Part shown: positions 9,067-64,000 of the stretch, piece by piece
How the letters are laid out: each line of letters opens with the position of its first letter
Position numbering within the stretch: the first letter of the stretch is position 1
Assembly: GCA_043228905.1 (NCBI GenBank)
Contig: JBHGNT010000010.1
Coordinates: 8,494,001-8,558,000, forward strand
Source: Azolla caroliniana
Taxonomy: Eukaryota > Plantae > Polypodiophyta
Direction of reading: 5' to 3'
Length of the DNA: 64,000 nucleotides
Notes under the pieces: generated by a model
What the model saw: the letters and a program-made list of their open reading frames with translations, nothing else
Told to the model about the DNA's origin: nothing
Databases searched by the model: none
Position numbers and translations under genes: made by a program

Positions 9067-9523
9067 TCGATAAACCTTCATGTTTAAGGGGTAGTGGATG
9101 AGACTAGATATCTAAACGTAAGTTGATCTCTAATTGCATCTTGATCGCAATGTTTAAGGGGGTATTGATGAGACTAGATATTAAGCGTTAATTAAATTAA
9201 TCAACTACACAACAAAAACTAAACGTAATCCTAATCTGTACTTGATAGCGAAACAATAATGCACACTGATTCGAGGTTATTGTTTATTAACTCAAAATAG
9301 GTGGAAATATACACACTCACAAGTTGCAGGAATAACTCAGTTTATAGAGTGTCAGATTGAATATCTGAATATCATACTTAGATACACCTTCATGTTTAAG
9401 GGGAAGTGGAGGAGACTAGATATCTAAACATAATGTTGACCTTTAGTTGATCCCTCAATTTTTATCCAAAGTTATTCGAGAATTTTGTTTATGAACCATA
9501 TAGACAATATTGGATAGGAAATT

Positions 9524-9528
9524 GTGGG

Positions 9529-9560
<32 letters not shown>

Positions 9561-9588
9561 GTCACGTGTTCGATCCACGTTCACCGCA
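9524..9588 (+). pseudogene. tRNA-Phe pseudogene (8-nt deletion in anticodon arm)
   Basis: CAGACTGAAG|GTCAC lacks ATCTGAAG. Confidence 0.85.
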
Positions 9589-10086
9589 AAACGTACCAAA
9601 CACTTCAGGGAGACATATTTGAATGCACATATAAACATCATATTAATGTCATCAAGTCTTGTCCTTTGGGTGACAATATGGTCATGAATAATGCTAATTC
9701 AATCTTGAGCGCAATGTTTAAGGGGAACTCGATGACACTAGATATTCTACATTAATTGAATTAATCAACTACACACACAGGACTAAACATAATCCTACTC
9801 TCTACTTGATCGCGAAAAATTGATGTACACTCATTCAAGATTTTTGATTATGGACTCAAACTAGATGGAAATATACACACTTGCAAGTTGCAAGGATAGA
9901 TTAGTTCAGAGAGCATCATATTGAATATCTGAATATCATTGTTCGATACACCTTCATGTTTAAGGGGTAGTCGATGAGACAAGATATCTAAATGTAATGT
10001 TGATCTCTAGTTGATCGCTCAACTTTAATTCACAGTTATTCGAGAATATTGTTTATGAACCATATAGACAGTATTTGATGGGATGT

Positions 10087-10159
10087 TGGGGGATAGCTCA
10101 GTTGGGAGAGCGTCAGACGAAAGATCTGAAGGTCACGTGATCGATCCACATTCACCACA
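10087..10159 (+). pseudogene. tRNA-Phe pseudogene
   Basis: Altered acceptor stem, anticodon loop (ACGAAAGA) and B box. Confidence 0.8.
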
Positions 10160-10645
10160 AAAGGCAACGAACACATTCAAAAGACACATTTGAATGCATT
10201 ATTTGACATGAAATCTACGACTAAAATGAATATATAAAAATACTGAAATGAACATATAAACATCCTGTTACTGTCGACATGCGCAATGTTTAAGGGCGAG
10301 ACGACGAGACTATATAATCAACATTCATTAAATTAATTAACTTAACATAATCCTAATCTCTACCAGATCGCGAAACTTTAATGTACATTCATTTGAGATT
10401 TTTCTTTATTAACCCAAAATAGGTGGAAATATACACACTCGCAAGTTGCAGGAATAGATTAGTTTAGAGAGCGTAAGATTGAATATCCGAATATCATTGT
10501 TCAATACACCTTCATGTTTACGGGTTAGTGGAGGAGACAAGATATCTAAACGTAATGTTGATATCTAATTGATCTTTCAACTTTAATACACTGTTATTCG
10601 GTAGTTTCGTTTGTGAACCATAGAGACAATATTTGATGGGATGTT

Positions 10646-10718
10646 GCGGGGATAGCTCAGTTGGGAGAGCATTAGACTGAAGATCTGAAGGTCACGAGTT
10701 CGATCCACGTTCACCGCA
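10646..10718 (+). tRNA. tRNA-Phe(GAA), variant with stem mismatches
   Basis: 73-nt match to consensus with 3 substitutions. Confidence 0.7.
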
Positions 10719-11251
10719 AAAGGCAACAAACACTTTCGAGAGACACATTTGCATGCATTACTTTACAAGAAATCTACGAATAAACTTTAACATATAAACA
10801 TCCTGTTAATGGCGACAAGTCTTGTTCTGTTCAGTTACAATATGGTCATGTTTCATGCAAATTACATCTGGATCGCTATGTTTAAAGGGGAATCGATGAG
10901 ACTAGATATTAAACGTTAATTGAATTAATCAACTACACAACTACAACCAAATGTAATGCTAATCTCTACTTGATAACGAAACATTAATGCACACTCAAAC
11001 AAGATTTTGGTTTACTAAGTAAAGATACGTGGAAATATACACACTCGCAAGTTGCAGGGATAGATATGTTCGGAGAGCGTCAGATTGAATATCGGAATAT
11101 CATTGTTGGATACACCTTTATGTTTAAGGGGTAGTGGATGAGACTAGATATCTAAACGTAAAGTTGATCTCTAATTGATCGTTCAACTTTAATCCACTGT
11201 AATTCGGGAATTTTGTTTGTGAAGCATAGAGACAATATTTGATGGGATGTT

Positions 11252-11324
11252 GCGGGGATAGCTCAGTTGGGAGGGCGTCAGACTGAAGATCTGAAGGCCA
11301 CGTGTTCGATCCACGTTCACCGCA
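11252..11324 (+). tRNA. tRNA-Phe(GAA), near-intact
   Basis: 2 substitutions (GAGGGCG, AGGCCAC). Confidence 0.75.
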
Positions 11325-11855
11325 AAAGGCAACAAACACTTTCGAGAGACACATTTGCAAGTATTATTATATGAGAAATCTACGAATAAACTTAACATAT
11401 AAACATCCTGTTAATGGCGACAAGTCTTGTTCTGTTCGGTTACAATGTGGTCATGTTTCATGCTAATTACATCTGGATCGCAATGTTTAAAGGGGAATCG
11501 ATCAGACTAGATATTATACGTTAATTAAATTAATCAACAACACAACTACAACCAAAACTATTCATAATCTCTACTTGATAGCGAAATATTAATGCACACT
11601 CAAACAAGATTTCCGTTTTTTAAGTAAATATAGGTGGAAATATACAGACTCGCAAATTGCAGTGATAAATATGTTCGGAGACCGTGAGATTCAATAAATG
11701 AATATCATTGTTCGATACACCTTTATGTTTAAAGGGTAGTGGATGAGACTAGATATCTAAACGTAAAGTTGATCTCTAATTGATCGTTCAACTTTAATCC
11801 ACTGTTATTCGGAAATTTTGTTTGTGAAGCATAGAGCAATATTTGATGGGATGTT

Positions 11856-11928
11856 GCGGGGATAGCTCAGTTGGGAGAGCGTCAAACTGAAGATCTGAAA
11901 GTCACGTGTTCGATCCACGTTCATCGCA
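11856..11928 (+). tRNA. tRNA-Phe(GAA), variant
   Basis: 3 substitutions. Confidence 0.65.
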
Positions 11929-12478
11929 AAAGGCAACAAACACTTTTGAGAGACACATTTGCATGCATTATTTTACAAGAAATCTACGAATAAACTTAAC
12001 ATATAAACATCCTGTTAATGGTGACAAGTGTTGTTCTGTTCGGTTACAATATGGTCATGTTTCATGCTAATTACATCTGGATCGCAATGTTTAATAGGCA
12101 ATCGATGAGATTAGATATTAAACGTTAATTGAATTAATCAATTGCACAACTACAACCAACGTAATACTAATCTCCACTTGGTAGCGCGACATTAATGTAC
12201 ACTAAAACAAGATTTTGATTTATTAAGTAAGGATAAGGGGAAATATACACACTCGCAAGTTGCAGGGATACATATGTTCGGAGAGCGTCAGATTTAGTAT
12301 ATGAATATCATTGTTTGATACACCCTTATGTTTGAGGGGTAGTGGATGAGACTAGATATCTAAACGTAAAGTAGATATCTAAATGTAAAGTTGATCTCTA
12401 ATTGATCGTTCAACTTTAATCCACTGTTATTCGGGAATTTTGTTTGTGAACCATAGAGACAATATTTGATGGGATGTT

Positions 12479-12483
12479 GCGGG

Positions 12484-12519
<36 letters not shown>

Positions 12520-12551
12520 AAAGGTCACGTGTTCGATCCACGTTCACCGCA
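12479..12551 (+). tRNA. tRNA-Phe(GAA), variant
   Basis: 1 substitution in anticodon stem (TCTAA). Confidence 0.75.
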
Positions 12552-13082
12552 AAAGACAACAAACACTTTCGAGAGACACATTTCCATGCATTCTTTTACA
12601 AGAAATCTACGAATAAACTTAACATATAAAGATCATGTTAATGGCGACAAGCCCTGTTCTATTCGGTTACAATATGGTCATGTTTCATGCTAATTACATC
12701 TTGATCGCAATGTTTAAAGGGCAATCGATGAGACTAGATATTAAATGTTAATTGAATTAATCAATTGCACAACTACAACCAAACGTAATACTAATCTCTA
12801 CTTGATAGTGAAACATTAATGTACACTAAAACAAGATTTTGATTTATTAGGTAAAGATAAGGGGAAATATACACACCTGCAAGTTGCAGGGATAGATATT
12901 TCGGAAAGCGTCGGATTGAATATCGGAATATCATTGTTGGATACACCTTTAAGTTTAAAGGGTAGTGGATGAGACTAGATATCTAAACGTAAAGTTGATC
13001 TCTAATTGATCGTTCAACTTTAATCCACTGTTATTCGGGAATTTTGTTTATGAAGCATAGAGACAATATTTGATGGGATGTT

Positions 13083-13155
13083 GCGGGGATAGCTCAGTTT
13101 GGAAAGCGTCAGACTGAAGATCTTAAGGTCACGTGTTTCATCCACGTTCACCGCA
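13083..13155 (+). pseudogene. tRNA-Phe, degenerate (B box TTTCATC)
   Basis: Several substitutions, including the D and T loops. Confidence 0.7.
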
Positions 13156-13687
13156 AAAGGCAACAAACACATTCGAGAGACACATTTGCATGCATTATTT
13201 TACGAGAAATCTACGAATAATCTTAACATATAAACATCATGTTAATGGCGACAAGTCTTGTTCTCGTCGGTTACAATCTGGTCATGTTTCATGCTAATTA
13301 CATCTATATCGCAATGTTTAAAGGGCAATCGATTAGACTAGATATTATTTGTTAATTGAATTAATCAACTGCACAACTACAACCAAACCTATTCATAATC
13401 TCTACTTGATAGGGAAATATTAATGCACACTCAAACAATATTTTTGTTTTTTAAGTAAATATAGGTGGAAATATAAAGACTCGCAAGTTGCAGTAATAGA
13501 TATGCTCGGAGACCGTGAGATTGAATATATGAATATCATTGTTGGATACACCTTTATACTTAAGGGGTAGTGGATGAGACTAGATATCTAAACGTAAAGT
13601 TGATCTCTAATTGATCGTTCAACTTTAATCCACTGTAATTCGGGAATTTTGTTTGTGAACCATAGAGACAATATTTGATGGGATTGT

Positions 13688-13760
13688 GCGGGGATAGCTC
13701 AGTTGGGAGGGCGTCAGACTGAAGATCTGAAGGCCACGTGTTCGATCCACGTTCACCGCA
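13688..13760 (+). tRNA. tRNA-Phe(GAA), near-intact
   Basis: Same 2 variants as the copy at 11252. Confidence 0.75.
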
Positions 13761-14292
13761 AAAGGCAACAAACACTTTCGAGAGACACATTTGCAAGTAT
13801 TATTCTATGAGAAATCTACGAATAAACTTAACATATAAACATCCTCTTAATGGCGACAAGTCTTGTTCTGTTCGGTTACAATGTGGTCATGTTTCATGCT
13901 AATTACATCTGGATCGCAATGTTTAAAGGGGAATCGATTAGACTAGATATTATACGTTAATTGAATTAATCAACTACACAACTACAACCAAACATAATCC
14001 TAATCTCTACTTAATAGCGAAATATTAATGCACACTCAAACAAGATTTTGGTTTTTTAAGTAAATATAGGTGGAAATATACAGACTCGCAAATTGCAGTG
14101 ATAGATATGTTCGGAGAGCGTCGTATTGAATATCAGAATATCATTGTTGGATACACCTTTATGTTTAAGGGGTAGTGGATGAGACTAGATATCTGAACGT
14201 AAAGTTGATCTCTAATTGATCATTCAAATTTAATCCACTGTTATTCGGGAATTTTGTTTGTGAACCATAGAGACAATATTTGATGGGATGTT

Positions 14293-14300
14293 GCGGGGAG

Positions 14301-14340
<40 letters not shown>

Positions 14341-14365
14341 ACGTGTTCGATCCACGTTCACCGCA
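14293..14365 (+). tRNA. tRNA-Phe(GAA), T8>G variant
   Basis: Single substitution in the A box. Confidence 0.7.
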
Positions 14366-14538
14366 AAAGGCAACAAACACTTTCGAGAGACACATTTGCA
14401 GGCATTATTTTACGAGGAATCTACGAATAAACTTAACATATAAACATATTCTCAATTGGACCGTGAAGTCGAAACAAGGAGTGCGGACGGTAGGCAATCG
14501 GTGGGTGCAATATGTAAGATGTAGAGTTATAGAGAAAA

Positions 14539-14657
14539 GGTTTAGGGTTTAGGAATTAGGGTTTGAGTTTTGGTTTAGGTTTAGGGTTAGGGTTAGGGTT
14601 TAAGAGTTAGGGTTTAGTGTTTGTTTTGGGCTTAGGGTTTAGAGGGTAAAAGGGTTT
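14539..14657 (+). repeat. Degenerate telomere-like repeats (TTTAGGG/TTAGGG mix)
   Basis: GGTTTAGGGTTTAGG...TTAGGGTTAGGGTTAGGGTTT... Confidence 0.8.
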
Positions 14658-14938
14658 ACGATTAAGTGCAAGAGGGGATAAAAGTGAAAAGAAACACCAA
14701 GAATAATTTGAGCACACCCAAATCATTTGACAAACTTGGTGTAAGTGAGGCATAATAAGAGATAGAGGAATGGGAGGGAGAGAGAGAGAGAGAGAGACGA
14801 GGGATTAATCACTAACATTATAATTAGTAACAAGGTAAAACATAACCATAAGCTAAATAGTCTAGATTAGAGAGAGGGAGAGATTAAGAAGGAGACTAAT
14901 TTTCATTAAGAAAAAGGAAAAATTACAATACGATGGGT

Positions 14939-14999
14939 AATGGTCATGAGCAAACTAATTTCGCCCCCTACGGGGCTCATCAGTGCTACCATGACCATT
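14939..14999 (-). ncRNA. Type I hammerhead ribozyme (minimal stem III)
   Basis: Minus strand: AATGGTCATG-GT-AGCA CTGATGA GCCCC-GTAG-GGGGC GAAA TTAG TT^TGCT-CATGACCATT; both core boxes, stem II and a long bulged stem I are present. Confidence 0.85.
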
Positions 15000-15701
15000 T
15001 GGGGTGGATAGGTTTATATAGGGAGTTTTCGGAGTGGCTTTAGAGAAATGACAATAGGGAGTGGGGTTGTGCTTATGGATGTGATTGAAAGGGGTGGAAA
15101 GATTTGGAGAAGAAGGAAGAGGATTTTATGGTCTTTAATGTGATAAGGGGAAGGCTTTGGTATGAGGTTATATTGTAAAAGGAGGGATAAGAAGAAAAGG
15201 GAGAGGTTAGGATATAAAATGTAAAAAGTGAGGAAATATAAGGGGCATTAAGAGAGAGGGGGAAACAAGGCTCACGTGAGATGATGAGAAGGGAAGGAGA
15301 GAGAGAGAGAGAGAATGAGTAGACATAAGGGGAGTGAGTAGATCTAGGAGGAGAGAGAGTGGGAAAACGTGAAAAAATTAAGAGAGAGCAAAAGGGGAGA
15401 GAGAGGAGAGAGATGTGTGTGTAAACTAGAAAAAGTAAGAGAGAGAAAGGAAAGAGGAGAGAGGTAAGGGAGAGAGACATGTGTGGGAAAAATAAAGGGG
15501 AAGGCTATAGATTTAGGAGGAGGAGGGGAGGGGTAGGGTAAGAAAAAGTAGAACATGGGTGAGGGTAGAAATATAAAATAGAAAGGTGGAGAAAGAGTAA
15601 AAAGAAAACGAAGGGACTTACAAAGAGGAGGCTAAGGGTTTAGAAAAAAGGAAGAGGAGGGGTAAGGTAAGCAGAAAAAAGGAAGAGGAGGGGTAAGGTT
15701 T

Positions 15702-46644: not shown

Positions 46645-46765
46645 AAAGGCAATAAACACTTTCGATAGACACATTTGAATGCATTATTTGACAAGAATTC
46701 TAGGCATGAAATGAACATATAAACATCTTGTTAATGTCGACAAGTCTTGTCCTTTGGGTGACAAT

Positions 46766-48175
46766 TTTTTTTCACGAAGTTAGATCTTCAAGGTGCCTAC
46801 AACCTTGTTCGAATTCTTCTTGGGATGAATGGAAGACTGCTTTCCACACTCGTTATCGCCATTTTGAATGCACCAACAATTTTCCAACATATGACGAATG
46901 ACATTTTTCGGGACTTCCTCGATACCTTTATCATAGTTTACCTAGATGATATCTTGATCTACTCAAAAACTCAAGAGGAGGAAGTACGCATGTTCAAACT
47001 CTTACATACTTCTTGCAAACTCTCTTCCGGCTACCATCTAAAAACTAACAGACTGAGTGAGTGCACCAACCAAACAGCTAGAACAGTATCTTCATTGTTT
47101 TGTCCACTATCAACAAGATGATTGGGTTGATCTATTATATTTGGCGGAATTTTCTTACAACAACTCAGAACATTCTTCTACTGGATATTCCCCACTTTTT
47201 GCAAACATTGGGTACCATCCTCGTTGGACGATGCTTGAACATCCCAAACTTCTGGCAAACCCGGTTCTTGAAGATCGGCTCACCCGACTCAAAGAAGTTC
47301 AAGATATACTTCTGCACCATTTATGTGATGCCCAAAACACTTAAAAGAAGGTTGTTGACCATCATCAGTGTGATTCATCGACTACGTTTCAAGTAGGCCA
47401 TTGAGTATGGCTCTATCAAGGTAGCATTAAAACCACCCGACCTTCCTACAAACTGGATTATCAACGTTTCGGCCCATATGTGATCTCTTGTAAGGTCAAT
47501 GATGTGACGTTTCGCCTTAATCTTCCTCCTCATATGCGTCTTCACCCAGTCTTCCATGTTTCACTTTTGGAGACCTACACAACAAGCTCTATTTTGGGTC
47601 ATCTTACACCTCCCCCACCTCCAATCGACATTTCTAAATGGATCTGAATATGAGGTCATTGCCATTCTCGACTCCAAGATCATCCGCAACAAACTATATT
47701 ATTTGGTTGATTGGTTAGGTTATACACCTAATGATCGAACATGGGAGCTTACCGAGAATCTTGTTAATACCTCCGACATGGTTGTTGCATTTCACAACAA
47801 ATATCCCCATAAACCAAGTCCAAACTCTTGTCTTCCGACTCGTGGAACTCGTCGTCGAAAATGGGGGATAATGTCCTAAAGACATACATTTTGGCTTATC
47901 AGGAGTCAAACCCACAACTTTTTGGTCTATGTGTTGAACCTTTAACCATTGTAATAACATATATAATGTGTAATTATAATAATTATATTTTTAGTTATTA
48001 CAAGATATTTAGAATATTCTAGAGCATTCAATATTATTCTTAAACATTCTTGAATATTTCATGATTATATATATTATCATAAATATCTAAAATATTCTAG
48101 AACATTCTAGAATACTCCATAAGGATCTAATAAATCTTGATAATGTTTTATAAAGATAATATTAACAACACGCTA
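46766..48175 (+). mobile_element. Chromoviral Ty3/Gypsy remnant (RT, integrase, chromodomain, PPT, start of 3' LTR)
   Basis: FTKLDLQGAYNLVR, IVYLDDILIYSKT, QDDWVDLLYLAEFSYNN, chromodomain EYEV..ILD..YLVDWLGY..RTWE; PPT GGGGGATAA then TGTC at 47872. Confidence 0.88.
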
Positions 48176-50223
48176 TGATCAACTAGAGGTGCATGTGGTG
48201 CGACATTGTCAGCCATATTCGAAGAGTGCGTCGACTTCGCCGAAGCACTTAAGAACAATGTCATGTACCTATGGAATAGTCGGGTACACGTAGAGGGCGT
48301 CCACTAGAAATAAAAATCGGTCGGGGCAGGATAAAAAGGCTAATGGAGGAGGTTGCGGCGCGACACGCAGAGACCATCCACTACTCGGCGTCGGCTAGCA
48401 TCTGGGTCAAGGGTAAGAGCAGCGTTGGCTCCTGAGGCGATGCCGGATTCTGGCCGATAGTGCTTGAATGCTTCTCCGGAAAGAAGTTGGCGAAGGAGAA
48501 AGCAGACTGCGCGGAGAGGCGGGTTTGAGAGGTCACCAGATGGGACGATCCCGATTGAGGAAAAAAACGGTTTTGTAGAAACCACGTGCCAAAACTATGA
48601 GGTTCTGGTTGAAGACAAGCGGGCCGGGATGGCCGAAGGGGCTGGTCCCTCTAATTGATACGACACCCGAAGTGAACCGAAGGAAGATGATGGTGGTCCA
48701 GCTCGTGACGACATGCAAGGGTTGCCAACTGCATTCCGGAATCCGACACCAAGAGGAGTAGCACTCGACCTACCCGCCAGCCATTCACTTCAAGTGGATG
48801 GTCAACCTAGTGACAATGGTGATGGGGGTAGGGCAAATGAGGTACTTGGTGCTCGTGAGAGAGGACCTGACGAACCAGGTGGAGGATCGGGCCTTAATGA
48901 GCAAGACGACCGCAGCAGTATGCCGGTTCCTGATTGAAGACGTAGTATGCCGGTATGGATGCGTCCAGAAGATAGTAGCCGACCGAGGGGACCCTGATGT
49001 GCAAGAAGTCGAGGAGTTGTTCTACCAAATAGGGGTCAACCTCTCCCTTACAAGGGCATACAATCTGGAAGCGAACGGGGAAGTCGAACGAAGGCACATG
49101 CCGATCGTCAAGGCGATAGTGCGGGCATGCAACGGACAAGTCGGAAATTGGCCGAGACTTCTACCTTATGCACTATGGGCCGACCAAACTACACACAGTT
49201 CAATAACCGGATACATGCCAACCAAACTCATGTTCGGACAGGAGCCGATCATGCCGATAGAGCGAATGATAACATCATGGATGTTGGTCGACTGGTCAAA
49301 CGCGATGAGTCGGAAGGAGTTGCTAGCAACGCGGATCCAACAGCTCAAGCGAAGGCCAGAGGACGTGAAATGAGCGACGGTGAAGGTGGAAGAGGCGAAG
49401 TGGAAGAACAAGGGACGGTTCGAACGGACACACAGACTGAAGCCAAAGAAGATTGAAGAATGCGACTGGTTGTTGGTCTACGACAGCAGCCTCGACAACC
49501 AACATCAATCGACCCTGACGTTCGCAAAACGGTGTTTTGGGTTGTACATGTACGTGGTGATGAGCGCCAATGAGAACGCAACATACCACCTAGTGGAGCT
49601 CGACTGAATGAAGATAGTGGTATCGGTCGCAAGGAAGCGAATAAGGCCTTCAAGAAGTGACACAAGCCAGAACTGGATCCGGAGGTGGAAGAAGAAGACA
49701 GGAAGGCTTAGGAGCCGAATGAGGATCAGAGGAGGACAAGCAACGGGCCGGAATCCCCACTACTTCACTAGATTGGCACATATTGGAGGATGTGTGGTTT
49801 GGTGGGGGTGGATGTCGTGAAGGATTCCAGCCATAGGAGGAAAGGGGAGTCGGATGCGCGTGAACGGGGGTGTGCAAAAACGATGCACACGAACTAGGGT
49901 TTATATACATAAAACATATATGTAAATACCGAGGTCTAATAAGTACTAGACAAAGATAGTTTATTCAGTACTTTAAGTATCCCATAAAAAGAGGGGAATA
50001 ATAGGATATGATGGGAGTAAATCGTGTGAGGGATTGTTGACAGGAGCGATTGTCATCAATGCTAATGTAATCGACCTCCCCTTGTTCTATAAAAGGAGAG
50101 GAACGGATCTAAATCGGGGGCATCCATCGTTTTGGAGAACCAAGTGTTGTCGGACCGAGCGTTGCAGGTTTCAGTTTTCTGTTCTGAGTTTCCGGTGCTA
50201 GTAGTGAGCACTCTGTTTCGCAT

Positions 50224-51296
50224 TGTCGTGAAGTACGAAAGCTTCACATTAAAAGTTTACAATAAGATAAATAAGTAACTAAAATAAAATAAATATTGAT
50301 AATGTTTTATAAAGATAATATTAACAACACACTATAATAATAGTATACGTTATATGTAGAGGCAAATAAAAAAATCATATATATTATATTACATGGACAA
50401 GAGAGGACTTCAACCAATAACCCCCACCTTATGACTCTCAAACCTTACCATTTAAAGTGTCTGGTTTACCTTACCACTTGTAATATATATAAAACTATTT
50501 GTGTTGTTTTATTTGAAGTAGTATTGTCTGGTTTAATACCATAAACCATATAATGTACTACATGTGCACCATATAATATATTACATTGGCAAGAGAGGAC
50601 TTGAACCAACAACATCTACCTTACAAGTCTCAAACCTTACCATTTACCCAATATCCATGTATGTTGTATTATTTGAATTGATAATATATAGTCCAAACCA
50701 TGTACTTTACTACATGCCCATATAGCACAAATGCAAGAGCCCTCTCTGCATGTGTGACATATGGCCCACATGCAAAACCATCCCCTTCCTATAAAAGGAG
50801 AAGGGAGTATAGTCACAAGGATATGGAAGGAATTGAAATCGAAGAACTATATTGTATACTATATCATGAGAATCAAATAGAATTATATTACATAAGAGAT
50901 ATCATAAGATAAAAAGAGCAAGAGAAGAAGAAAAGACAAGACAAGAGCTAGCTTGGCGGTTGTGGTGCTCAACTCGCAACGAAAGGGCGACGGTTTGATT
51001 CTTATCTTCATCGAAATAGTGAAGTGAAGATTGTTGTGGCTCTTACTATCAACAAAGAGAAGAGTGATTACCTTGTGAGACAAAGTTCAAAGGTTCAACG
51101 TCGCCCGTAGTCATTTTGTAACTATTTCATCAAATAATTATAAATTTCTTTTATTCCTTCAAATATCATTTTATATCCTATATTGTCATATCTTGTTGAT
51201 CTCTATTTACTCTATCTCTACTTTTTCGTCTCTTCTGTCCATAATCCCAGTGATACCTTCCTCACTTTCACAATATCTTTTGTCTACATAACGATA
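50224..51296. mobile_element. Probable solo LTR nested in the Gypsy LTR
   Basis: TGTCGT...ACGATA ends; imperfect TSD CGCAT/CGCTT. Confidence 0.6.
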
Positions 51297-51363
51297 CGCT
51301 TCTAGGCGAGCCATGCCAAGACAGCGTTAGAAGCCTGTGTGATCCCAATCAGAGGCTCACTAG

Positions 51364-51367
<4 letters not shown>

Positions 51368-51408
<41 letters not shown>
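51368..51408. repeat. (TG)n microsatellite
   Basis: ~20 TG units. Confidence 0.95.
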
Positions 51409-51410
<2 letters not shown>

Positions 51411-52117
51411 AGAGCTCGAAGCTTTGTTATCGGTCGTGCCCTGTTGTATTCCTCACTGCTACTGACTAATCGATCACCTTTGTTACTATTTGGATCTCCT
51501 TGTGTCATTGAGTGTCTCTCTCTGTTCTGTCCACATTCTCATCTTCTGTTTTCCTTCGCTAGCTTGTTTAGCTAAGTCTCTGGGCCTGTGTGCTCATTGT
51601 CTAGAATCCGGCGACAAGACCGGAGCAGTATACGTGTTTGAACCCGTGGGCTCATCATCCGGCATCCGGTGACTAGTCTGGATTGGTTACGTACCCATGC
51701 GCGTGTGCCGATGAAGATATCCTAAAACCGGCTCGGATATTCACTACACATTTCTCTCACTTTCTCTTATCGGCTCCTTTGTCGAAGACCCCGGTGGTCC
51801 CACCCCATTTCGACACATACTGGCAGATTTCCGCGACAATGTGGTGTAATTTTTATGCTTGTCCTCCATAAACTTTAGATTATGGATTCAAATAGTGAGA
51901 TTGTAAATCTTCATAATGTTGGGTTTAGATTATGCATACTAATTGTTTGTATGACTTTACAAATTGACTGCCATGCCCATGGGCCACAATCCAAATTTGA
52001 AAATAAAACCATTTGCTGACTTGGGGCAATTCTAATAAAAACCAAACCAAATTTCATTTATTACTGTAGTTTGCACAAAAAACATTAACAAGATTAACAA
52101 AGCGCCACAATCCAAAT

Positions 52118-52776
52118 CATAGTATGAACCATGCGTACCATTCGTGCATTCGTGTTCGAGAATGATTCAATCATTCGAGAATGATAAACACTGTCGAAGA
52201 ATGATAAATACCATACTTTTGGATCAATTTAAAAAATGATAAACACTCACGAAATTTCTGAAAGATGAAATTTCATCACTGAAATTTCTGAAATTTCAAT
52301 CAAAATTTCTGAAATTTCAGTGATGATTGAAATTTCAGAAAATTTGATTGAAATTTCAGAAATTTCAGTCATCACTGAAATTTCGTTGATGAAATTTCAT
52401 CACAGAAATTTCTGTGATGAAATTTCTGATTTTTTAGCACAGAAATTTCTGATTTTTCAGCACAGAAATTTCATCACTGAAATTAAAACCATATTTCTAC
52501 ACTAAATATACCTGAAGATTGAATGCACTCTGCAGAATCGCAAATCGTTTGAGGCTAGGTTGTAGAGGAGAAGAGAGCGTAACGTTAGTGCAGAGGAAAA
52601 GGGAGAAAAGAGGGAAAAATTGAAAAAAATTGAAAAAAAAATGAAAAAAAGTGAAAAAAAAAATGAAAAAAATGAAAAAAAAAAAAACATACGAATATTT
52701 GCATATCATTCGTGTTCGTTTTCCAACGTATGAAAACGAATGATATGGCAGACGAACACGAATTTTACGTACTATG
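52118..52776. mobile_element. Non-autonomous hAT-type DNA transposon (MITE)
   Basis: TIR CATAGTA.../...TACTATG; 8-bp TSD ATCCAAAT (52110-52117 / 52777-52784); internal GAAATTTC repeats. Confidence 0.82.
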
Positions 52777-54302
52777 ATCCAAATTTAAAAATAAAACCAT
52801 TTGCTGCCCTAGGGCAATGCTAATAAAAACCAAATCAAATTTCATTTATTACTGTAGTTTGCACACAAAACAATAACAAGATTAACAAAGCATGAAACTT
52901 ATAACGTTAGATTCCCATATTAATCCTTTATGTTAAAATATGTCGCATAGTTTTTCCACAATTTCTCTATCTCTTGTGTTCTTCTTGAGATGATAGAACA
53001 CAAAAACATAAATAGAGTAATAATGCATGATCAAAAGAAGCATGTCAATTCTTGTATCAAGACAATTTCAATTCCAATATTACTATGTAGAAGGTTATTA
53101 ACTTGACTACCTTTGTGCCACATAGTATCACTTGCAAATTTAGGAAAAACAAAATATCATGACTTGTCAACGAACCCTATCGATTAGCATCACATCATTT
53201 CTGAAAGGAAAAGCTAAAAATGACGATATACAGAAAAGCATGCTATATAATTGATGTACTTTAAAACATAAGTTTTAATGAATTGTTTGTGCAACAGAAA
53301 TTCTCCTACTATGGAAAAGATCTCCACATAACAATGTTTCACAAAACAAAGGCGTAATACATTAATGTTGTTTACCTACGGGTTATGATAGTTGCCTGCA
53401 TTTAAAACTGGAGACATTCAATAACAGAATGATATTATAATTGACACACTGTTGTTAGGATTTCCTAAATACTAAAAATTTATTGACATCATTTAGCTTT
53501 AGTTATTAGATTCATGTTTCTTCTCTTCAAGAATGCCCACCATAGAGGCTAGAAAATCCAAATGAGATGGATGAGTACATTGTTGCAAACATCGCTCAAA
53601 CAAATAACGATAAATAGGGAAAGGTTTAACATTAGGTTTATTGATCACTGTATGTCATAGACTAAGTGATTCTAAGAATGTTTGTAGCTTGATCTCAAGT
53701 CCCATGTCCATGCCATCGTTGAATATACCTATGACAATGTTGTTAATTTCTACCAAATGCTCAGCAGAATAAAGCATAGCAGGCCTTCAAGCTAGGGTCA
53801 CAAATCATGGTAGGAAGGCCTATGACGATGAAATGGTGGAGTCTCATTGGTCTCAAGAAGAAGAACAAGAGTAGTACCAGCTAAGGCAACATATCTATAT
53901 ACAAATCCTCCTCTCATTCATCATCATGAAATACATGTGCTTGATTGCAATTTTTTGATACAAGGTTTAGCATCAAAGATAATGATTGTGTTGTGTGTCA
54001 TTGCCTAGAGCTCCAACCCATGCATCCATGGCATATCATTGTTAGCCTGTACAACATGAAAGCACACTTGAAAGGCTTTCTGCGGATGCTAAGTTTCTCC
54101 TTACTCCACACCAAACATATGCTTCCTTCAAGCACCAGACATCATGTTGCTGTTGTTGCTCTGCAGAATTGTTTTGCACATGCTCATTTCATTCATAGCA
54201 CATGTACCAGTGTTCCATGCATCAGAGAATCATGATTAACCTCGGAAATTTGTAGAACGAAACGTGCATTCTCTATCTAGTTATGTGAATACTCTCTATG
54301 GA

Positions 54303-56081
54303 TCACACCTGATACGATATCATCGGATTAGGGAGCCAACCATGCATTATACAGTATGTCATCTGATTCAGTTGACAGCCCTTTTCAATCATAGTACTAG
54401 CAATAGATATTGCCAATTCATGTTTGCCGTCCCTAAATAAAGCATGTAATACTGGGTTGTAAACAACTGCATCTGGCTCATAACCATTCTCCATCATATC
54501 ATTGATCAATGCCCAAGCATCATTTAATTCCCCCACCTTACAGAAGAATTCAATAAGCCAAGTGTAGGTGACCAAGTCTGGGGAACAACCCTTGGATATC
54601 ATATGATTTACAATCTGCAGGGCTACATCCGATTGACCCCCTTTCGCATACCCAAGAATCAAAGAATTGTAGGTGAATGTGTCGGGGGAAGGAGATCCCT
54701 TCTCCATCTTCTGCACCAGCACTGCTGCTTCCATGACTCTCCTCTCCTTGCACAACCAATCAACAACAATGTTGAAAGTGGCCACATTTGCATGTCCTTG
54801 CTCTGCCAGACTCTCAAAGGCTGACAAGGCAAATGTACTCTCTCCTGACTTGAGAAGACCATGAATGAGTGCTGTATATGACACTGTATCTAGTTGACAT
54901 GACCCACTGGTGACCATCTGCTCAAACACATGCATAGCCTCCTTTACCTTACCCATCCTGAAGAACCAGTGAAGAAAGATAGTGTATGTAACAGCATTAG
55001 GCTTGCTTTTGCTCGCCATGGCTTGTCCATATGTATGAAGGGCACCCTGTGTGCATCCCTGCTTCAGATACTCGGCCATCACAGTGTTGAACATCCGAAG
55101 GTCAGGTGAAAGACCCTGCTTCAGCATCTCCTGTAGAAAGAAGTTGGCGCTCTCGACTTGATTATTGGCACAGAATCCTGTGATTAAGGTGTTGAATGTG
55201 GCCTCATCAGGAGCACATCCAGAGTGCAGCATTTTGGAGAAGGTAAACAGTGCTCTTTCTGGTCGATTGTTGTGGAGCAACGCGAACAGGATGGCATTGT
55301 ATGTGTAGACGTTAGGCTTGCAGTGGAATTCACGCATCGAATGAAGTGTCATTTCTGCTTCTTTCAGCATTCCGGACTTGGCATATGCAGAGATGAGTAT
55401 GGTGAAAGGGATGGGTTTCACTCTCAACCCAGCATTCCTCATGTCCTCGATGACTGTCCAGATGCCGTCCAGATCCCCAGCCTTGCCCAGGACATGGATT
55501 AGGGCATAAAAAGTGTAGTAATCGTGCATGAACAAAGGCTGCCTTTGGGCCCAGCGGAAGAGGCTCCAGGCAACAGCAGGCTGCCTCAACTGCTTCAGAA
55601 TGCGAGCCAATATGCGTGTCTGGAGCTTGGGCAACAGGGCCGACAAGGCATGCTCAAGGCCGGCGCCTCCATCTCCTTCTTCTTCTTCTTCAAGCAATAT
55701 CCTGCAAACATCTACCGCTTCTTTGGCCTCTGATACCTTGAAAGAGGGCAAGGTGAAGGGCGCCTCCTTGAAATTGGATTTCATGGAGTCTGTGTCGGAT
55801 CGGGATTCAGAATCGGAGTTGGAGTTGGAAGAGGAAGACCACATCCTTCTCCTTCTCTGACCATTACTACGGCCGCCATCGCCACTTCTGCTGTTGCTTT
55901 GGGCTGAAGGAACAACAAAAACCCTACTAACAACAGCGATTCCTCCTCCCCCCCTTTCCTTTCTTGAACGTGTCAAAGCGCAGCCGTCCTCATCATTGAA
56001 GACGATGATGCCAACAGGTCTGCAGGGAGCTGCAGGAGCAGGATAGATGGAGATGGATGTTGCCAGTCGAATCCCCAACAT
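54303..56081 (-). CDS. P-class pentatricopeptide repeat (PPR) protein, probably organelle-targeted
   Basis: Uninterrupted ORF with ~10-11 tandem 35-aa motifs (PNVYTYNAIL, PDEATFNTLITGFC, PDLVTYTWLIEFFCKVG) after a Ser-rich N-terminus; likely start MLGIR at 56081 (the upstream ATG at 56231 runs through a hexamer repeat). Confidence 0.9.
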   Translation of the reverse strand: MLGIRLATSISIYPAPAAPCRPVGIIVFNDEDGCALTRSRKERGGGGIAVVSRVFVVPSAQSNSRSGDGGRSNGQRRRRMWSSSSNSNSDSESRSDTDSMKSNFKEAPFTLPSFKVSEAKEAVDVCRILLEEEEEGDGGAGLEHALSALLPKLQTRILARILKQLRQPAVAWSLFRWAQRQPLFMHDYYTFYALIHVLGKAGDLDGIWTVIEDMRNAGLRVKPIPFTILISAYAKSGMLKEAEMTLHSMREFHCKPNVYTYNAILFALLHNNRPERALFTFSKMLHSGCAPDEATFNTLITGFCANNQVESANFFLQEMLKQGLSPDLRMFNTVMAEYLKQGCTQGALHTYGQAMASKSKPNAVTYTIFLHWFFRMGKVKEAMHVFEQMVTSGSCQLDTVSYTALIHGLLKSGESTFALSAFESLAEQGHANVATFNIVVDWLCKERRVMEAAVLVQKMEKGSPSPDTFTYNSLILGYAKGGQSDVALQIVNHMISKGCSPDLVTYTWLIEFFCKVGELNDAWALINDMMENGYEPDAVVYNPVLHALFRDGKHELAISIASTMIEKGCQLNQMTYCIMHGWLPNPMISYQV

Positions 56082-56195
56082 TTGTTGCTCGAGAGTGTGC
56101 GTTTCTTCGTTCTGTTTTTCTGTGCTGGGTCTGAGTTGGGTCAGGTCGGGTCTGGTCTGGCCAAGCAGACAAGTCAGGTCTGGGTGGGGAAATCT

Positions 56196-56228
<33 letters not shown>

Positions 56229-56550
56229 CATGATTATGGTGAAATGATCAAGCTAAGACATAATAAATACATTCAGCAATAGTAAATTTCCCTTGGCTTC
56301 CTGGATAGGGAAGTCCAATCAAGGTCAAGGTCAAGGTCATGTTCAGAAGTTCAAGCTAGAGCTAATACATTCTGGAATAGTAAATTTCCCTTTCCTCCCA
56401 GGGTCGGGTAGTCCGGTAAAGGTCAAGATCATGGTCAGAAGGTCGAGCTAAACATAATACATTATGTGGTATCAAATTTCCCGTACTTTTCTTGGTAGGG
56501 AAGTCCGTTCAAGGTCAAGGTTAAGGTCATGGTCAGAAGGTGAAGCTAGA
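56196..56550. repeat. (GGTCAA)n tract and ~100-bp degenerate tandem repeats upstream of the PPR gene
   Basis: GGTCAA x5-6 at 56196-56230; recurring AAGGTCAAGGTCATG...AAGCTA...AAATTTCCC...AGTCC units. Confidence 0.8.
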
Positions 56551-57289
56551 CTTGGTATATATTATTATGAAGCACATACGAGAATGAACAACACTGACCA
56601 AAACACCACCTACCCACCCTCTCGACGCACTCCGGGTGTGCTACGAGAACATCTTCATAGTCCCAATCACATCATGTTAGTCGTATAAGAAGATGTAAGA
56701 GTGCATGCATGTTTGTTTGCATGTGATTAGGTTATGTCCATTGGAAACCGAAAACCATCATGATAGTCAAAACATGTACACCTTGCAAGTATGCAAAATA
56801 AATAGACAAAATTGATAGCCAAAAAAATGGATGTAAGAAATAAAAAAAGAGAGAGACTAATATGCAAGGGTAATTAAGTACTAGGATGTGGAGTGTGAGT
56901 TGTATATAGTATGCTTGTTTGCATTTTGCGATATACAAGTATCAAATGCATATCTAAGAGATCTTGTACTTCATGTATCCTTCAGTGAAATACAAGTGTG
57001 GCTCCTAAATATACATACATCGGAATCCATTACTTACAACTTTCTCTCTTAATAAGGTGAAGACAACTTCACCTTATTTAGAGGGAATGTGTGGAAGATC
57101 TTTGCTGACTTTTGTAGGTCTTGTCTTGTCTTGGGTTTTCTCCTTTTACTTAGTGATTTAGAGCTATTACCATATCCCCTTAATCTCCTATTTGATTCCA
57201 ATAGACATTAATTAAGCTAAACCTTACTCCACTCTTGTATGGTATTAAACACTTTCTCATAATAAAAAGTTGTCAAAATAGTATTACAA

Positions 57290-59688
57290 TTATTAGAGAT
57301 TTTTGTTAACTAACCCAAAACAGATAGAAATATATATATACTTTTGATAGCAAGTTGCAGGGAGAGCGTCAGATTCAAGATCTAAAGGTCACATGTTCAA
57401 TCCATGTTCACCACACAAGACAACACACTTTGGAGTGACACATTTGAATACATTATTTGACAAGAAGTGTACGAATGAAATAAACATATAAACATCTGTT
57501 AATGTCGACGAGTCTTGTCCTTTTGGGTGACAATATGGTCATGTTTCATGCTAATTCCATGTTGAGAGCAATGTTAAAGGGGGAGTCGATCAGACTAGAT
57601 ATTCAACGTTAATTAAATTAATCAACTGCACAACCACAACTAAACGTAATCCTAATCTCTACTTGATCGAGAAACTTTAATGCACACTGATTCGAGATTT
57701 TTGTTTATTAACCCAAAATACATAGAAATATACACACTAGCAAGTGGCGGGGATAGATCAATTGGGAGAGCGTTAGGTTGATGATCTGAACATCATTGTT
57801 CGATACACGTTCACTAGAAAAGACAACAAACACTTTAAAAAATGCATTATTTGACAAGAATTGTGCGAATGAAATGAACATATAAAGTTTCGCGATCCAG
57901 TAGAGATTAGGGTTACGTTTAGTTGTGTTGGTGCAGTTGATTAATTCAATTAACGTTGAATATCTAGTCTTATCGACTCCCCCTTTAACATTGCGTTCAA
58001 CATTAGCATGAAACATCCTGTTAATGTTGACAAGTCTTGTATTTTAGGGTAACAATATGGTCATGTTTCATGCTAATTCCATGTTGAGCGCAATGTTTAA
58101 GGGGGAGTCGATGAGACTAGATATTCAACATTAATTGAATTAATCAACTGCACAACCAAAACTAAACGTAATCCTAATCTCTACTGGATCGCGAAACTTT
58201 AATGTACACTAATTAAATTATTTTTTTTATTAACACAAAATAGGTGGAAATATACACACTCGCAAGTTGCAGGGATATATTAGTTGGGAGAGCGTGAGAT
58301 TGAATATTTGAACATCATTGTTCGATACAAGTTCATGTTTAAGGGGGAGTGGATGAGACCAGATATCTAAACGTAATCTTGATGTCTAGTTGATCACTCA
58401 ACTTTAATCCACAGGTATTGAAAAAATTTGTTTCTGAACCATATGGCCAGTATTTGATGGGAAGTTGTGGGGATAGCTCAGTTTGGAGAGCGTCAAACTA
58501 AAGATCTGAAGCTTACGTGTTCAATCCACGTTCATCGCAAAAGGCAACAAAGACTTTCGAGATACACATTTGAAAGCATTATTTTACGAGAAATGTACGA
58601 ATGAAATGAACATATAAACATCCTTTTAATGTCGACAAGTCCTATCCTTTTGGGTGACAATATGGTCATGTTTCATGCTAATTCCATCTTGAACACAATG
58701 TTTAAGGGCGAGTTGATGAGACTAGATATTAAACGTTAATTGAATTAATCAACTCCACAACCACAACTAAACGTAATCCTAATCTCTACTTGATAGCGAA
58801 ACTTTAATGCACACAGATTCGAGATTTTTGTTTATTAACCCAAAATAGGTGGAAATATACACACTCGCAAGTTCTAGGGATAGATCAGTTGGGAGAGTGT
58901 GAGATTCAATATCTGAACAACATTGTTCAATACACGTTCATGTTTAAGGGGGAGTGGATGAGACCAAATATCTAAACGTAATCTTGATCTCTAGTTGATC
59001 GCTCGACTTTAATACACAGTTATTCAAGAATTTTGTTCTTGAACCATATAGACAGTATTTGATGGGAAGTTGTGGGGACAACTCAGTTCGGAGAGCGTCA
59101 AACTGAAGATATGAAGGTCACGTGCTCAATCCACGTTCACCACAAAAGGCAACAAAAACTTTCAAGAGACACATTTGAATGAATTATTTGACAAGAAATC
59201 TATGAATGAAATGAACATATAAACATCCTGTTAATGTAGACAAGTCTTGTCCTTTTGGGTTTCAATATGGTCATGTTTCATGCTAATTCCATCTTGAGCG
59301 CAATGTTTAAGGGGGAGTTGATGAGACTAGATATTGAACATTAATAGAATTAATCAATTGCACAACCACAACTAAATGTAATCCTAATCTCTACTTGATT
59401 GCGAAACTTTAGTCCACACTCATTCGAGATTTTTGTTTATTAACCCAAAATAGGTGGAAATATACACACTTGCAAGTTGCAGGGATAGATTAGTTGGGAG
59501 AGCATCAGATTGAATATTTGAATATCATTGTTTGATAACGTTCATGTTTAAGGGAGTGTGGATGAGACTAGATATCTAAACGTAATCTTGATCTCTAGTT
59601 GATCGCTCAACTTTAATCCATAGCTATTCGAGAATTTTGTTTATGAACCATATACATAGTACTTCATGGGAACTTGCGGGGATAGCTT

Positions 59689-59721
<33 letters not shown>

Positions 59722-62700
59722 ACACGTGTTCAATCCATGTTCACCGCAAAAGGCAACAAACACTTTCGCGAGACATATTTGAATGCATTATTTGACAATA
59801 ATTCTACCAATGAAAGGAACATATAAACATCATATTAATGTCGACAAGTCTTGTTCTTTTCGGTGACAATATGGTCATGGTTCATGCTAATTCCATCTGG
59901 ACCATAATGTTTAAGCGGGAGTCAGTGAGACTATATATTTAACTGCACAACCACAACGTTAATTGAATTAATCAACTACACAACCACAACGAAATATAAT
60001 CCTAATCTCTATTTCATCGCGAAACTATAATGCACACTCATTCGAGATTTTTGTTTATTAACCCAAAATAGGTCGAAATATACGCACTCGCAAGTTGCAG
60101 GGATATATCAGTTGGGAGAGCATGAGATTGAATATCTGAACATCATTATTCCAGACACGTTCATGTTTAAGAGGGGGTGGAAGTGATGAGATATCTAAAC
60201 GTAATCTTGATATCTACTCGATCGCTCAACTTTAATCCACAATTATTCAGGAATTTTGTTTGTGAACCATGTAGAGAATACTTGACGGGAAGTTGCGGGG
60301 ATAACTGAGTTGGGAGAGCGTCAGACTGAAGATCTAAAGGCCATGTGTTTGATCCACGTTCAACGCAAAAGGTAAGAAACAATTTCGAGAGACACATTTG
60401 AATGCATTATTTGACAAGAATTCTACGAATGAAATGAACATATAAACATCCTGTTAATGTCGACAAGTCTTGTCCTTTTGGGTTACAATATGGTCATATT
60501 TCATGCTAATTCCATCTTGAGTGCAATGTTTAAGGGGGAATCGATTCGACTAGATATTCAATGTTTATTGAATTAATCAACTCACTCGAGATTTGACAAG
60601 AAAGCTACGAATGAAATGAACATGTAAACCTCATGTTAATGTCGACAAGGCTTGTTCTTTTCGTTGACAATATGGTCATGTTTCATGCTAATTCCATCTC
60701 GAGCCCAATGTTAAGGGGGGAGTCGGTGAGACCAAATATTCAACGTTAATCGAATTAATCAACTGCACAACCACAACGAAATATGATCCTAATCTCTACT
60801 TGATCGCGAAACTTTAATGCACACTCACTCGAGATTATTGCTTATAAACCCAAAATAGGTGGAAATATACACACTCGCAAGTTGCAGGGATAGATAAGTT
60901 GGGAGAGCTTGAGATTGAATATCTGAACATCATTGTTAGATACACGTTCATCTTTAAGGGGTACTGGATTTGACTAGATATCTAAACGTTGTCGTAGTGT
61001 ATTTCGTACACTACGTGAAAAAGTAAAAATAATATAACCGATTTAATTACATATAAATAAATAAAATAAGAATATTAAGATATTTATCACCAATAAATAA
61101 AATAAGAATATCAAGATATTTATCACGTGCATAGGGCAAGATTCAAACCTTGTACCTCCACGTAGCCAAACCTCAACTTTACCATTATGCTACCTTATCT
61201 TTAGTGTTCTACAAATAGATTTAATAACTATAAGTCCTTTATTTGCGCCTACCTTTATTAAAAGGTAAATCATGCATTTTTAGAGTGCGTGAATATTTTA
61301 TAGAAAAACGCAAGCAACTAAAAAGTGACTCATGCACATCTAGCGTGCATGAGCACTATATTTAGCAAATAAAAGCAAGGATTAGAAAAGCATCACGTGC
61401 ATATTTAGTGTGCATGAACATATTAGAAAAAAAGCATGTAGCTATGCTTAGTCTCTCCCATCACTACATAAGGATGGGGAGCACAATGTAATAGGTGTGT
61501 GAAAAATATTTGGAAACTGGATATGTTTCTAAAAAACACCAATTAATAAACTATACTCGTGGGATTCACGAGGATTCTATATCATTCTCTTTCAACCGAA
61601 GTTTATATTCTTATATTCATATTGATTAATCTAATACAATACACTCGTGGGATTCACGAGTTTGCTATAACTCTTTCTTACAACATATTTATATTCTTAT
61701 TAGCCTTAAAACTCTCCTCTTCCTAGTCCAAAACCCCAGCGGTTCCCACCCGACTCACGCAAACGATCCGGAGCCGAAAGGCACGACAACGTAATCTTGA
61801 TGTCTAGTTGATCGCTGAAATTTAATCCACAATTATTCGGGAATTTTGTTTGTGAACCATATAGACAGTATTTGATAGGAAGTTTCGGGGATAGCTAAGT
61901 TAGGAGAGTTAAACTGAAGATTTGAAGGTCACGTGTTAATTCCACGTTCACCACAGAAGGCAACATACACTTTTGAGAGACACATTTGAATGCATTATTT
62001 GACAAGAAATCTACGATTGAAATCAACATATAAACATCCTGTTAATGTCGACAAGTCCTGTCCTTTTGGGTGACAATATGGTTATGTTTCATTCTAATTC
62101 CATGTTGAGCGCAATGTTTAAGGGCGAGTCGATGAGACTAGATATTCAATGGTAATTGAACTAATCAACTTCACAACCACAACTTAACATAATCCTAATC
62201 TCTACTTGATAGCGAAACTTAAATCCACACTCATTCGAGATTTTTGTTTATTAACACAAAATACTTGGAAATATACACACTCGCAAGTTGCGGGGATAGC
62301 TCAGTTGGGAGAGCGTGAGACTGAAGATTTGAAAGTCTTGTGTTCGATCCACGTTTACCGGAAAAGGTAATAAACACTTTCGAGAGACACATTTGCATGC
62401 ATTATTTGAGGAGAATTATACGCATGAAATGAACATATAAACATCCGACACAAAAGGTAGCAAACACTTTAGAGAGACATAATTGAATACACATATAAAC
62501 ATCATGTTAATGTCGACAAGTCTTGTCCTTTAGGTGACAATATTGTCATGTTTCATGCAAATTCCATCTTGAGCGTAATGTTTAAGGGGGAGTCGGTGAC
62601 ACCAAATATTCAACGTTAATTGAATTAATCAACTGCACAACCACAACGAAATATAATCCTAATCTCTACTCGATCGCGAAACTTTAATGCACACTCACTC

Positions 62701-64000
62701 GAAAAATTTGTTTATAAACCCAAAATAGGTGGAAATATACACACTCGCAAGTTGTAGGGATAGATAACTTGGGAGAGCGGGAGATTAAATATCTGAACAT
62801 CATTGTTCGATACACGTTCATGTTTAAGGGGTACTAGATGAGACTAGATATCTAAACGTAATCTAGATCACTAGTTGATCGCTCAAATTTAATCCACAAT
62901 TATTCGGGAATTTTGTTTGTGAACCATATAGATAGTATCTGATGGGAATTTATGGGGATAGCTCAGTTGGGAGATCGTCAGACTGAAGATCTGAAGGTCA
63001 CGTGTTTGATGCACGTTCATCGCAAAAGGCAACAAACACTGTCAAGAGATACAATTGAACGTATTATTTTACAAGAAATCTACGAATGAAGTGAACATAT
63101 AAACATCATGTTACTGTCGACAAGTTCTGTCCTTTTGGGTGACAATAAGGATATGTTTCATTCTAATTCCATCTTCAGCGTAATGTTTAAGGGGGAGTCG
63201 GTGAGACCCAATATTCAACGTTAATTGCATTAATCAACTGCACAACCAGAACGAAATATAATTCTAATATCTACTTGATCACGAAACTTTAATCCACACT
63301 CACTAGAGATATTTGTTTATAAAACTAAAATAGGTGGAAATATACACACTCGCAAGTTGCAAGGATAGATAAGTTGGGCGAGCGTGAGATTGAATATTTG
63401 AACATCAAGTATTCGATACACGTTCATGTTTAAGGGGGAGTGGATGAGACAAGATATCTAAACGTAATCTTGATCTCTAGTTTATCGCTAGATATTAAAC
63501 ATTAAGGGTGAATCCATGCGACTAGATATTAAACGTTAATTCAATTAATCAACTAGGTAACCAGAACTAATCCTAATCCTAATCTCTACTTGATAGCGAA
63601 ACATTAATGCACAATCATTCGAGATTTTTGTTTATTAACTCAAAGTAGGTGGAAATATATACACTCGCAAGTTGTAGGGATATATAAGTTGGGAGAACGT
63701 GAGATTGAATATCTGAATATCATTGTTTAATACACGTTCATGTTGATCTCTAGTTGATTGCTCAACTTTAATCCACAGTTATTCAAGAATATTGTTTTAG
63801 AACCATATAGACAGTATTTGATGGGAGGTTGTGGGGATAGCTCAGTTGGGAGAGCGTTAGACTGAAGATTTGAAGGTCATGTGTTCGATCCACGTTCACC
63901 ACAAAAGGTAACAGACATTTTCGAGAGACATATTTGAACACATTATTTGACAAGAATTCTACCAATGAAATGAACATATAAACCTCATATTAATGTCCAC
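57290..64000 (+). repeat. tRNA-Phe satellite block 4 (older, more diverged; runs off the window)
   Basis: Degenerate tRNAs at 58467, 59072, 59676, 60295, ~61885, 62290, 62952 and 63831, plus chimeric remnants at ~57357 and ~57747. Confidence 0.92.
60990..61788. mobile_element. Solo LTR inserted in the satellite
   Basis: TGTCGT...ACGACA inverted termini; 4-bp TSD ACGT; the satellite resumes exactly. Confidence 0.85.

Follow-up and report, generated by a model that had tools for sequence, protein, structure and literature searches.

A Partly Decayed Tandem tRNA-Phe(GAA) Homocluster of the Known Plant Kind, Probably Silenced, in a 64-kb Window of Azolla caroliniana DNA

Introduction

Tandem clusters of tRNA genes are well described in plants, and homoclusters are known to reach 110 genes per cluster across 50 species (PMC12652284). 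The described cases include the tRNA-Pro and Ser-Tyr-Tyr clusters of Arabidopsis and other eudicots (PMC7544208), the tRNA-Ile (28 copies) and Ala clusters of maize together with species-specific homoclusters that include Ala and Gln (PMC11700998, PMC13437025), and a Val-Glu-Phe tandem repeat in the moss Ceratodon purpureus (PMC12652284). Counts reported for the fern Azolla filiculoides exceed 7500 for tRNA genes and 10,000 for tRNA-like sequences, and these numbers were attributed to genome duplication and repeats (PMC13578239). Here, we describe a tandem array of tRNA-Phe(GAA) genes in a stretch of 64,000 nucleotides (the window) from Azolla caroliniana (assembly GCA_043228905.1, contig JBHGNT010000010.1, positions 8,494,001 to 8,558,000). 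The array is best explained, with a probability of about 0.72, as a nuclear tandem tRNA-Phe(GAA) homocluster of the known plant kind, which is mostly surplus and probably silenced, and whose tRNA is weakly constrained.

The original prediction, made by a model from the letters alone, had pointed to the Arabidopsis clusters as a likeness, and this is correct. The Arabidopsis thaliana Pro and Ser-Tyr-Tyr clusters (PMC7544208, PMC12308677) share with the present array the co-oriented tandem repetition of complete nuclear tRNA genes, a copy number in the tens that is surplus to need, the proximity of repeats, and the inclusion of pseudogenes. They differ in that the array described here is of isotype Phe, has a 605-bp unit with a dead twin of the tRNA, and has decayed much further. 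It also lacks the CAA motif at positions -7 to -3, and its T runs are shorter and farther from the gene. Silencing has been shown in Arabidopsis, whereas here we infer it.

The maize tRNA-Ile homocluster and the other species-specific homoclusters (Ala, Gln) are similar in that a single isotype was amplified in a lineage-specific manner into a compact array, but the isotype and the lineage are different, and the array here has approximately 46 units over at least 55 kb, is broken by transposons, and extends past the window. The Ceratodon purpureus cluster is also a non-seed-plant tandem cluster that contains tRNA-Phe(GAA); it has three isotypes per repeat and identical copies, in contrast to the single isotype and graded decay observed here. 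A similar organization is found in 5S rDNA, which is a tandem short gene of RNA polymerase III (Pol III) with an internal promoter, a fast-evolving spacer of a few hundred bases, local homogenization and often partial silencing (presumed in the present case). However, strong selection together with concerted evolution keeps 5S genes close to uniformity, whereas the array has weak constraint and many dead copies.

In terms of novelty, the original prediction did not recognize a described Phe satellite of this type. A search of the plant tRNA-cluster literature, which was not exhaustive, found no single-isotype Phe cluster (PMC7544208, PMC11700998, PMC12652284, PMC13437025, PMC13578239); the kind of element, however, is well known. 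What is new for the class is the isotype Phe in a large array of which about half is decayed, and not a new kind of element.

Results

The array was mapped by BLAST with one 605-bp unit (37131-37735) as the query. This resulted in seven array stretches between 9069 and 64000 that add up to 27.6 kb, or approximately 46 unit equivalents, arranged head-to-tail with a period of 604-606 bp. The tRNA-Phe tandem array of about 605 bp and 45 or more copies that had been predicted was therefore recovered by BLAST, ARAGORN and Rfam alike. As predicted, it runs past the end of the window, where the last unit is severed; BLAST mapped the rightmost stretch to 57360-63995. The predicted span of 9067-64000 is only partly array: array DNA is found at both ends, but about half of the span consists of long terminal repeat (LTR) retrotransposon debris, a segmental duplication, an element bearing telomere-like repeats, and an intact PPR gene. 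The coordinates of the features are given in Table 1.

ARAGORN made 32 tRNA-Phe calls in the whole window, of which 30 had the anticodon GAA and two had AAA, and all but two inverted old copies were on the + strand. Rfam model RF00005 gave 41 tRNA matches above the gathering score, and BLAST with one tRNA gave 52 pieces when fragments are counted in. Across 34726-43091, 15 successive tRNA copies lie at a spacing of approximately 605 bp. The array thus has the density of at least five tRNA genes within 5 kb that is used to define a homocluster (PMC13437025), with one isotype in the same orientation and full genes that contain internal A and B boxes. It also resembles satellite DNA in its head-to-tail monomers, with a core of 99-100% identity and edges of 75-86%.

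Table 1. Features of the tRNA-Phe array and its interruptions (window positions)
Feature	Coordinates	Strand	Description
Array block A	9069..14456	+	Two badly decayed edge units (9523, 10086) and seven units of 604-623 bp
Element E	14444..15359		~0.9 kb, degenerate TTTAGGG-type repeats; inserted in array
Left-part copy of block A	28904..31749	+	From segmental duplication; one perfect tRNA (31089)
Element E' (second copy of E)	32326-33254		96% identical to E; different unit position
Isolated unit	33250..33872	+	~91-96% identical; tRNA 5'-truncated; between element E' and retroelement-like stretch
Main block	34538..43789	+	Contains young core; six of seven perfect tRNAs
Young core	36526-39020	+	Five units, 99-100% identical, all A57
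Reference tRNA-Phe(GAA)	37132..37204	+	73 nt, A57 variant; A box, B box, Phe identity positions
Dead twin tRNA-Phe	37538..37604	+	Offset ~+408 from tRNA start; in every unit
Inverted old units	43800..45234	-	~2.4 units; tRNAs with 6 and 11 changes
Old units	45305..46765	+	Include unit 45409
Array interruption	46766..57359		10.6 kb; Ty3/gypsy chromovirus fragment and PPR open reading frame
PPR open reading frame	54303-56231	-	Intact, intronless, P-type, 642 amino acids; inside interruption
Old rearranged block	57360..64000	+	~80-86% identical to young unit; runs beyond window end

The identity elements and invariant positions of tRNA-Phe are well established, and the consensus of the array copies contains all of them. 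It forms a full cloverleaf with the Phe identity positions G20, G34-A35-A36 and A73 and the invariants U8, A14, G18-G19, G53-C61, T54-T55-C56 and A58. The A box is TAGCTCAGTTGG (positions 8-19), the B box is GTTCGATCC (positions 53-61), and the T stem is the fully paired ACGTG/CACGT that had been noted in the original prediction. Angiosperm tRNA-Phe has G49-C65, and the array tRNA has A49-T65. On these features the array tRNA is predicted to be a cytosolic-type tRNA-Phe(GAA).

The predicted counts of seven perfect copies and five copies with a single G57>A change were both reproduced. The copies identical to the consensus start at 31089, 35320, 35923, 39552, 40157, 41207 and 41811, and those that differ solely by G57>A start at 36527, 37132, 37737, 38342 and 38947. 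These 12 copies hold all identity and invariant positions, with at most the purine change at position 57. Twenty copies reach an Rfam score of at least 60 bits, approximately 18-20 of them with complete identity elements, and the per-copy list of changes shows that over half of the copies are damaged. Some 18-20 copies still look usable, and the remainder are pseudogenes. Two decayed copies, at 46572-46644 and 58467-58539, have the anticodon AAA (G34>A) and were called tRNA-Phe(AAA) by ARAGORN; these are pseudogene variants and not a separate isoacceptor.

Each unit also carries a second, dead copy of the tRNA, of which approximately 68 nt can be aligned to the living tRNA at approximately 75-80% identity. 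The derived changes of this dead twin are common to young and old units, which indicates that the unit came from two tRNA-Phe copies, one of which was dead before the array diversified. The Rfam search returned no tRNA match for the dead twin at E<=1 and no RNA family for the spacer at E<=1. A tRNA-derived short interspersed nuclear element was considered as another identity for the repeat and was rejected because the copies are tandem at a fixed period, contain a complete gene, and have no tail at the unit ends.

The identity to the young unit drops stepwise from the core (99-100%) to the rest of the main block (90-97%), block A (88-93%), and the inverted and right-hand blocks (75-86% by BLAST), and the units flanking the core are 8-18% diverged. 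The tRNAs carry 1-5 changes in block A, which also contains a four-unit local duplication, and 4-9 changes in the old rearranged block, two of them with the anticodon AAA. At 40156-41205, two neighboring units of 525 bp share a deletion of approximately 80 bp (unit positions ~164-246), and this pair is a small private duplication inside the array. Such deletion variants, the four-unit duplication and the inversion are the usual pattern of unequal exchange in tandem arrays.

A tree built from the spacer columns separates an old family (units 9523, 43018, 45409, 45966, 58466, 59071 and 59675) from a younger one. On this tree, parsimony changes among 28 non-redundant units were counted, and the resulting rates were 0.85 changes per site for the living tRNA, 1.32 for the spacer, and 1.54 for the dead twin. 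The tRNA therefore changes at 0.64 times the rate of the spacer and 0.55 times the rate of its twin, and its rate is below that of every 73-nt spacer window (Poisson P = 1.3e-4). On internal branches, which are those with surviving descendants, the ratio of tRNA to spacer is 0.37, and on terminal branches it is 0.76. Units 43018 and 45409 have only 1-2 tRNA changes against a spacer divergence of 16-18%, and all of these changes fit the pairing or loop rules. In unit 45409, where the spacer is 16% diverged, the tRNA has two loop-compatible changes and the top Rfam score of 67.4 bits. Since the tRNA is slower than both the spacer and the dead twin, and since its sequence is almost intact in two old units, the living tRNA has probably been subject to purifying selection that is weak or intermittent, and many copies were freed to decay.

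The alternative that survives best, although we consider it unlikely, is a wholly neutral satellite made up of tRNA pseudogenes, in which the intact copies are simply the young ones and the slow rate of the tRNA comes from gene conversion or alignment noise. It is favored by the history of position 57, which lies in a CpG within the B box and has changed approximately six times. The five A57 copies all lie inside the 99-100% identical block, so the youngest block has amplified a CpG-decay variant, which shows that amplification is blind to tRNA quality. In addition, tRNA and spacer are equally diverged in units 13082, 45966, 58466 and 59071, with the tRNAs of the last three having decayed at the spacer rate, and the constraint on terminal branches is slight. 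Several observations argue against neutrality. Over the whole array, C>T changes per site amount to 0.93 at CpG and 0.52 at other C/G sites, compared to 0.25 for A/T transitions, which corresponds to 3.8-fold and 2.1-fold higher rates. With its higher content of G+C and CpG, the tRNA would be expected to mutate faster than the spacer, but no 73-nt window is slower. A neutral satellite also would not be expected to preserve the tRNAs of units 43018 and 45409, or to let the twin decay by approximately 20-25% while the living tRNA in the same unit held the consensus.

The signals for transcription around the tRNA are poor. A CAA motif at positions -10 to -3 is absent from all units, the closest one being at -19 to -17, and the first 25 nt 3' of the tRNA contain 3-4 T, compared to approximately 8 on average in non-flowering plants (PMC13578239). 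A TTTT run is found at +42/+43 in most of the young and middle-aged units, which agrees with the predicted distance of about 40-45 nt in the young units. Four of the five youngest units have an additional TTTT at +16 that was made by a CpG transition, and most of the old units have no T4 run within 70 nt downstream. No terminator-like run other than these T4 runs was seen. Angiosperm tRNA genes typically combine a CAA at -10 to -3 with a poly(T) terminator close by, a signal that does not define clusters, and the array lacks this combination. Because of the poor upstream and terminator signals, Pol III output is expected to be low or conditional. In Arabidopsis, the tRNA genes of the clusters are preceded by CAA at -7 to -3 and followed by T runs with a median of T5-T6, but despite these better signals they are silent and methylated (PMC7544208). 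By analogy with the Arabidopsis clusters, the present cluster is probably silenced by chromatin.

These results bear on the possibility that the array is an active dosage locus, in which most of the intact copies are transcribed and provide a large share of the cytosolic tRNA-Phe. The number of copies with high scores and complete identity elements and the significant constraint on the tRNA are what such a locus would show, and it has been speculated that very high tRNA gene numbers could aid translation in a fast-growing fern (PMC13578239). However, the pseudogene load, the lack of the upstream CAA with terminators that are weak and distant, the surroundings rich in transposable elements, and the silence of the better-equipped Arabidopsis clusters (PMC7544208) make a dosage locus very unlikely. 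Among the four roles offered by the original prediction, the best fit is a satellite that is silenced or decaying but retains some working copies, given the pseudogenes, the weak Pol III signals and the transposable-element setting.

A structural role in chromatin was also part of the original prediction, and it found no support. One form of it, in which the living tRNA is kept as a chromatin organizer through its TFIIIC/Pol III site and the array belongs to a genome-wide class of structural tRNA-gene satellites, is a long shot; if true, the extreme number of tRNA genes reported for a fern would find an explanation in such a class as well. That the array itself is kept for TFIIIC binding, as an insulator or condensin site, or as a centromere-associated satellite rather than for tRNA supply is highly improbable. 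All intact copies have A and B boxes, and a retroelement fragment with a chromodomain abuts the array, but the B box (0.83 times the spacer rate) is conserved no better than the remaining tRNA, and the constraint is distributed across the stems and the D arm. Moreover, the array is short, interrupted and partly inverted and contains an intact PPR open reading frame, and a match to the Pfam Chromo family is no evidence for a centromeric retroelement clade.

Independent sequence runs were compared with sampled words of two young units. Between 22% and 46% of the words were present in DNA runs that three studies had made of one organism, and in one run of a second organism. DNA runs of only approximately 70-80 million letters contain 28-46% of the words of a unit, and this share in such small runs hints at many genomic copies. 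Because independent DNA runs contain the unit words, the repeat sequence is not confined to this assembly, a conclusion that concerns the words of the unit. The two RNA-type runs listed for the first organism contain next to no unit words, and RNA runs of other organisms contain 4-8%, a share that may come solely from the tRNA part. When metagenomes were scanned with a 21-nt word conserved in the spacer, two contigs were returned that had no further similarity to the window, and these were taken as chance matches. The idea that a short cluster was inflated by misassembly is practically negligible: a 99% segmental duplication is a structure that assemblers can create, with nothing direct to point to it here, but the units differ in a graded, tree-like manner with unique insertions, deletions and an inversion, the duplicated blocks are not the same, and the unit occurs in independent runs.

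The segmental duplication relates 635-11912 to 15702-31750 at 98-99% identity. The second copy contains a complete copia element (gag, integrase and reverse transcriptase) with LTRs at ~20863-21397 and ~25588-26122, which is replaced in the first copy by a solo LTR at ~5779-6313. Because the sequences on either side of the solo LTR correspond to those just outside the full element, the first copy probably lost the copia body by recombination between the LTRs after the duplication. Older copia remnants are present at 3729-4862. The copia LTRs carry GC-rich minisatellites of 27-29 bp (ACCCGGCTACGGAGCCGGATGATGAAG-like) at their 5' ends (5725-5841, 20808-20925 and 25597-25665), and a related 54-bp repeat is found at 33954-34074, beside the isolated unit.

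The chromovirus fragment in the array interruption (46825-47879) has an RVT_1 domain at 46825-47121 and a chromodomain at 47556-47879. The PPR protein farther along has its closest protein-atlas clusters in Streptophyta, and an exact look-up of this protein gave no match. A 98-bp tandem repeat that starts with (GGTCAA)n flanks the PPR open reading frame at 56216-56551. The TTTAGGG-like tracts of elements E and E' were considered as true telomere or centromere sequence, and this was rejected because they are degenerate and part of a repeated 0.9-kb element. Rfam found no hammerhead at gathering level in the window; a sub-threshold type III match lies at 14953-15000 on the minus strand (18.8 bits versus a gathering score of 48.5, E = 0.68).

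Discussion

We propose that the array arose at the DNA level, through unequal exchange or slippage that acted repeatedly on the ~605-bp unit, and that it evolves by birth and death, with local amplification followed by decay. The unit goes back to a pair of tRNA-Phe copies, one of which died before the array spread. Recent local amplification produced the nearly identical core, and the older units at the edges have diverged, become inverted, suffered deletions or been broken by transposons. The tRNA has probably been weakly or intermittently selected as a gene, with single copies contributing little, and the cluster is probably kept silent by chromatin.

Several points weigh against this explanation of a surplus, silenced and weakly constrained homocluster. 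The constraint is modest, and misalignment of the spacer could account for part of it. Short-tract gene conversion, either between units or from dispersed tRNA-Phe genes, could likewise account for part of it. The rules for cis-elements come chiefly from angiosperms and may not apply in this lineage. In terms of silencing, the observed/expected ratio of CpG is approximately 1.05, which leaves no footprint of long-term heavy CG methylation; however, C>T changes are 3.8 times as frequent per site at CpG, and 2.1 times at other C/G sites, as A/T transitions. Finally, the array tRNA was judged by its own sequence and may differ from the standard isodecoder of the organism.

Why surplus Pol III genes are amplified in tandem, silenced, and sometimes reactivated is an open problem. 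The array adds a Phe case in what the analysis took to be probably a non-seed plant, and in this respect it is incremental. It also offers an internal control, as each unit contains both a living and a dead copy of the tRNA, and the comparison reveals a constraint on the living one that is weak but real. If such arrays abound in the genome, the very high tRNA gene and pseudogene counts of ferns would be explained by tandem amplification, which would be a simpler source of these counts than genome duplication and repeats.

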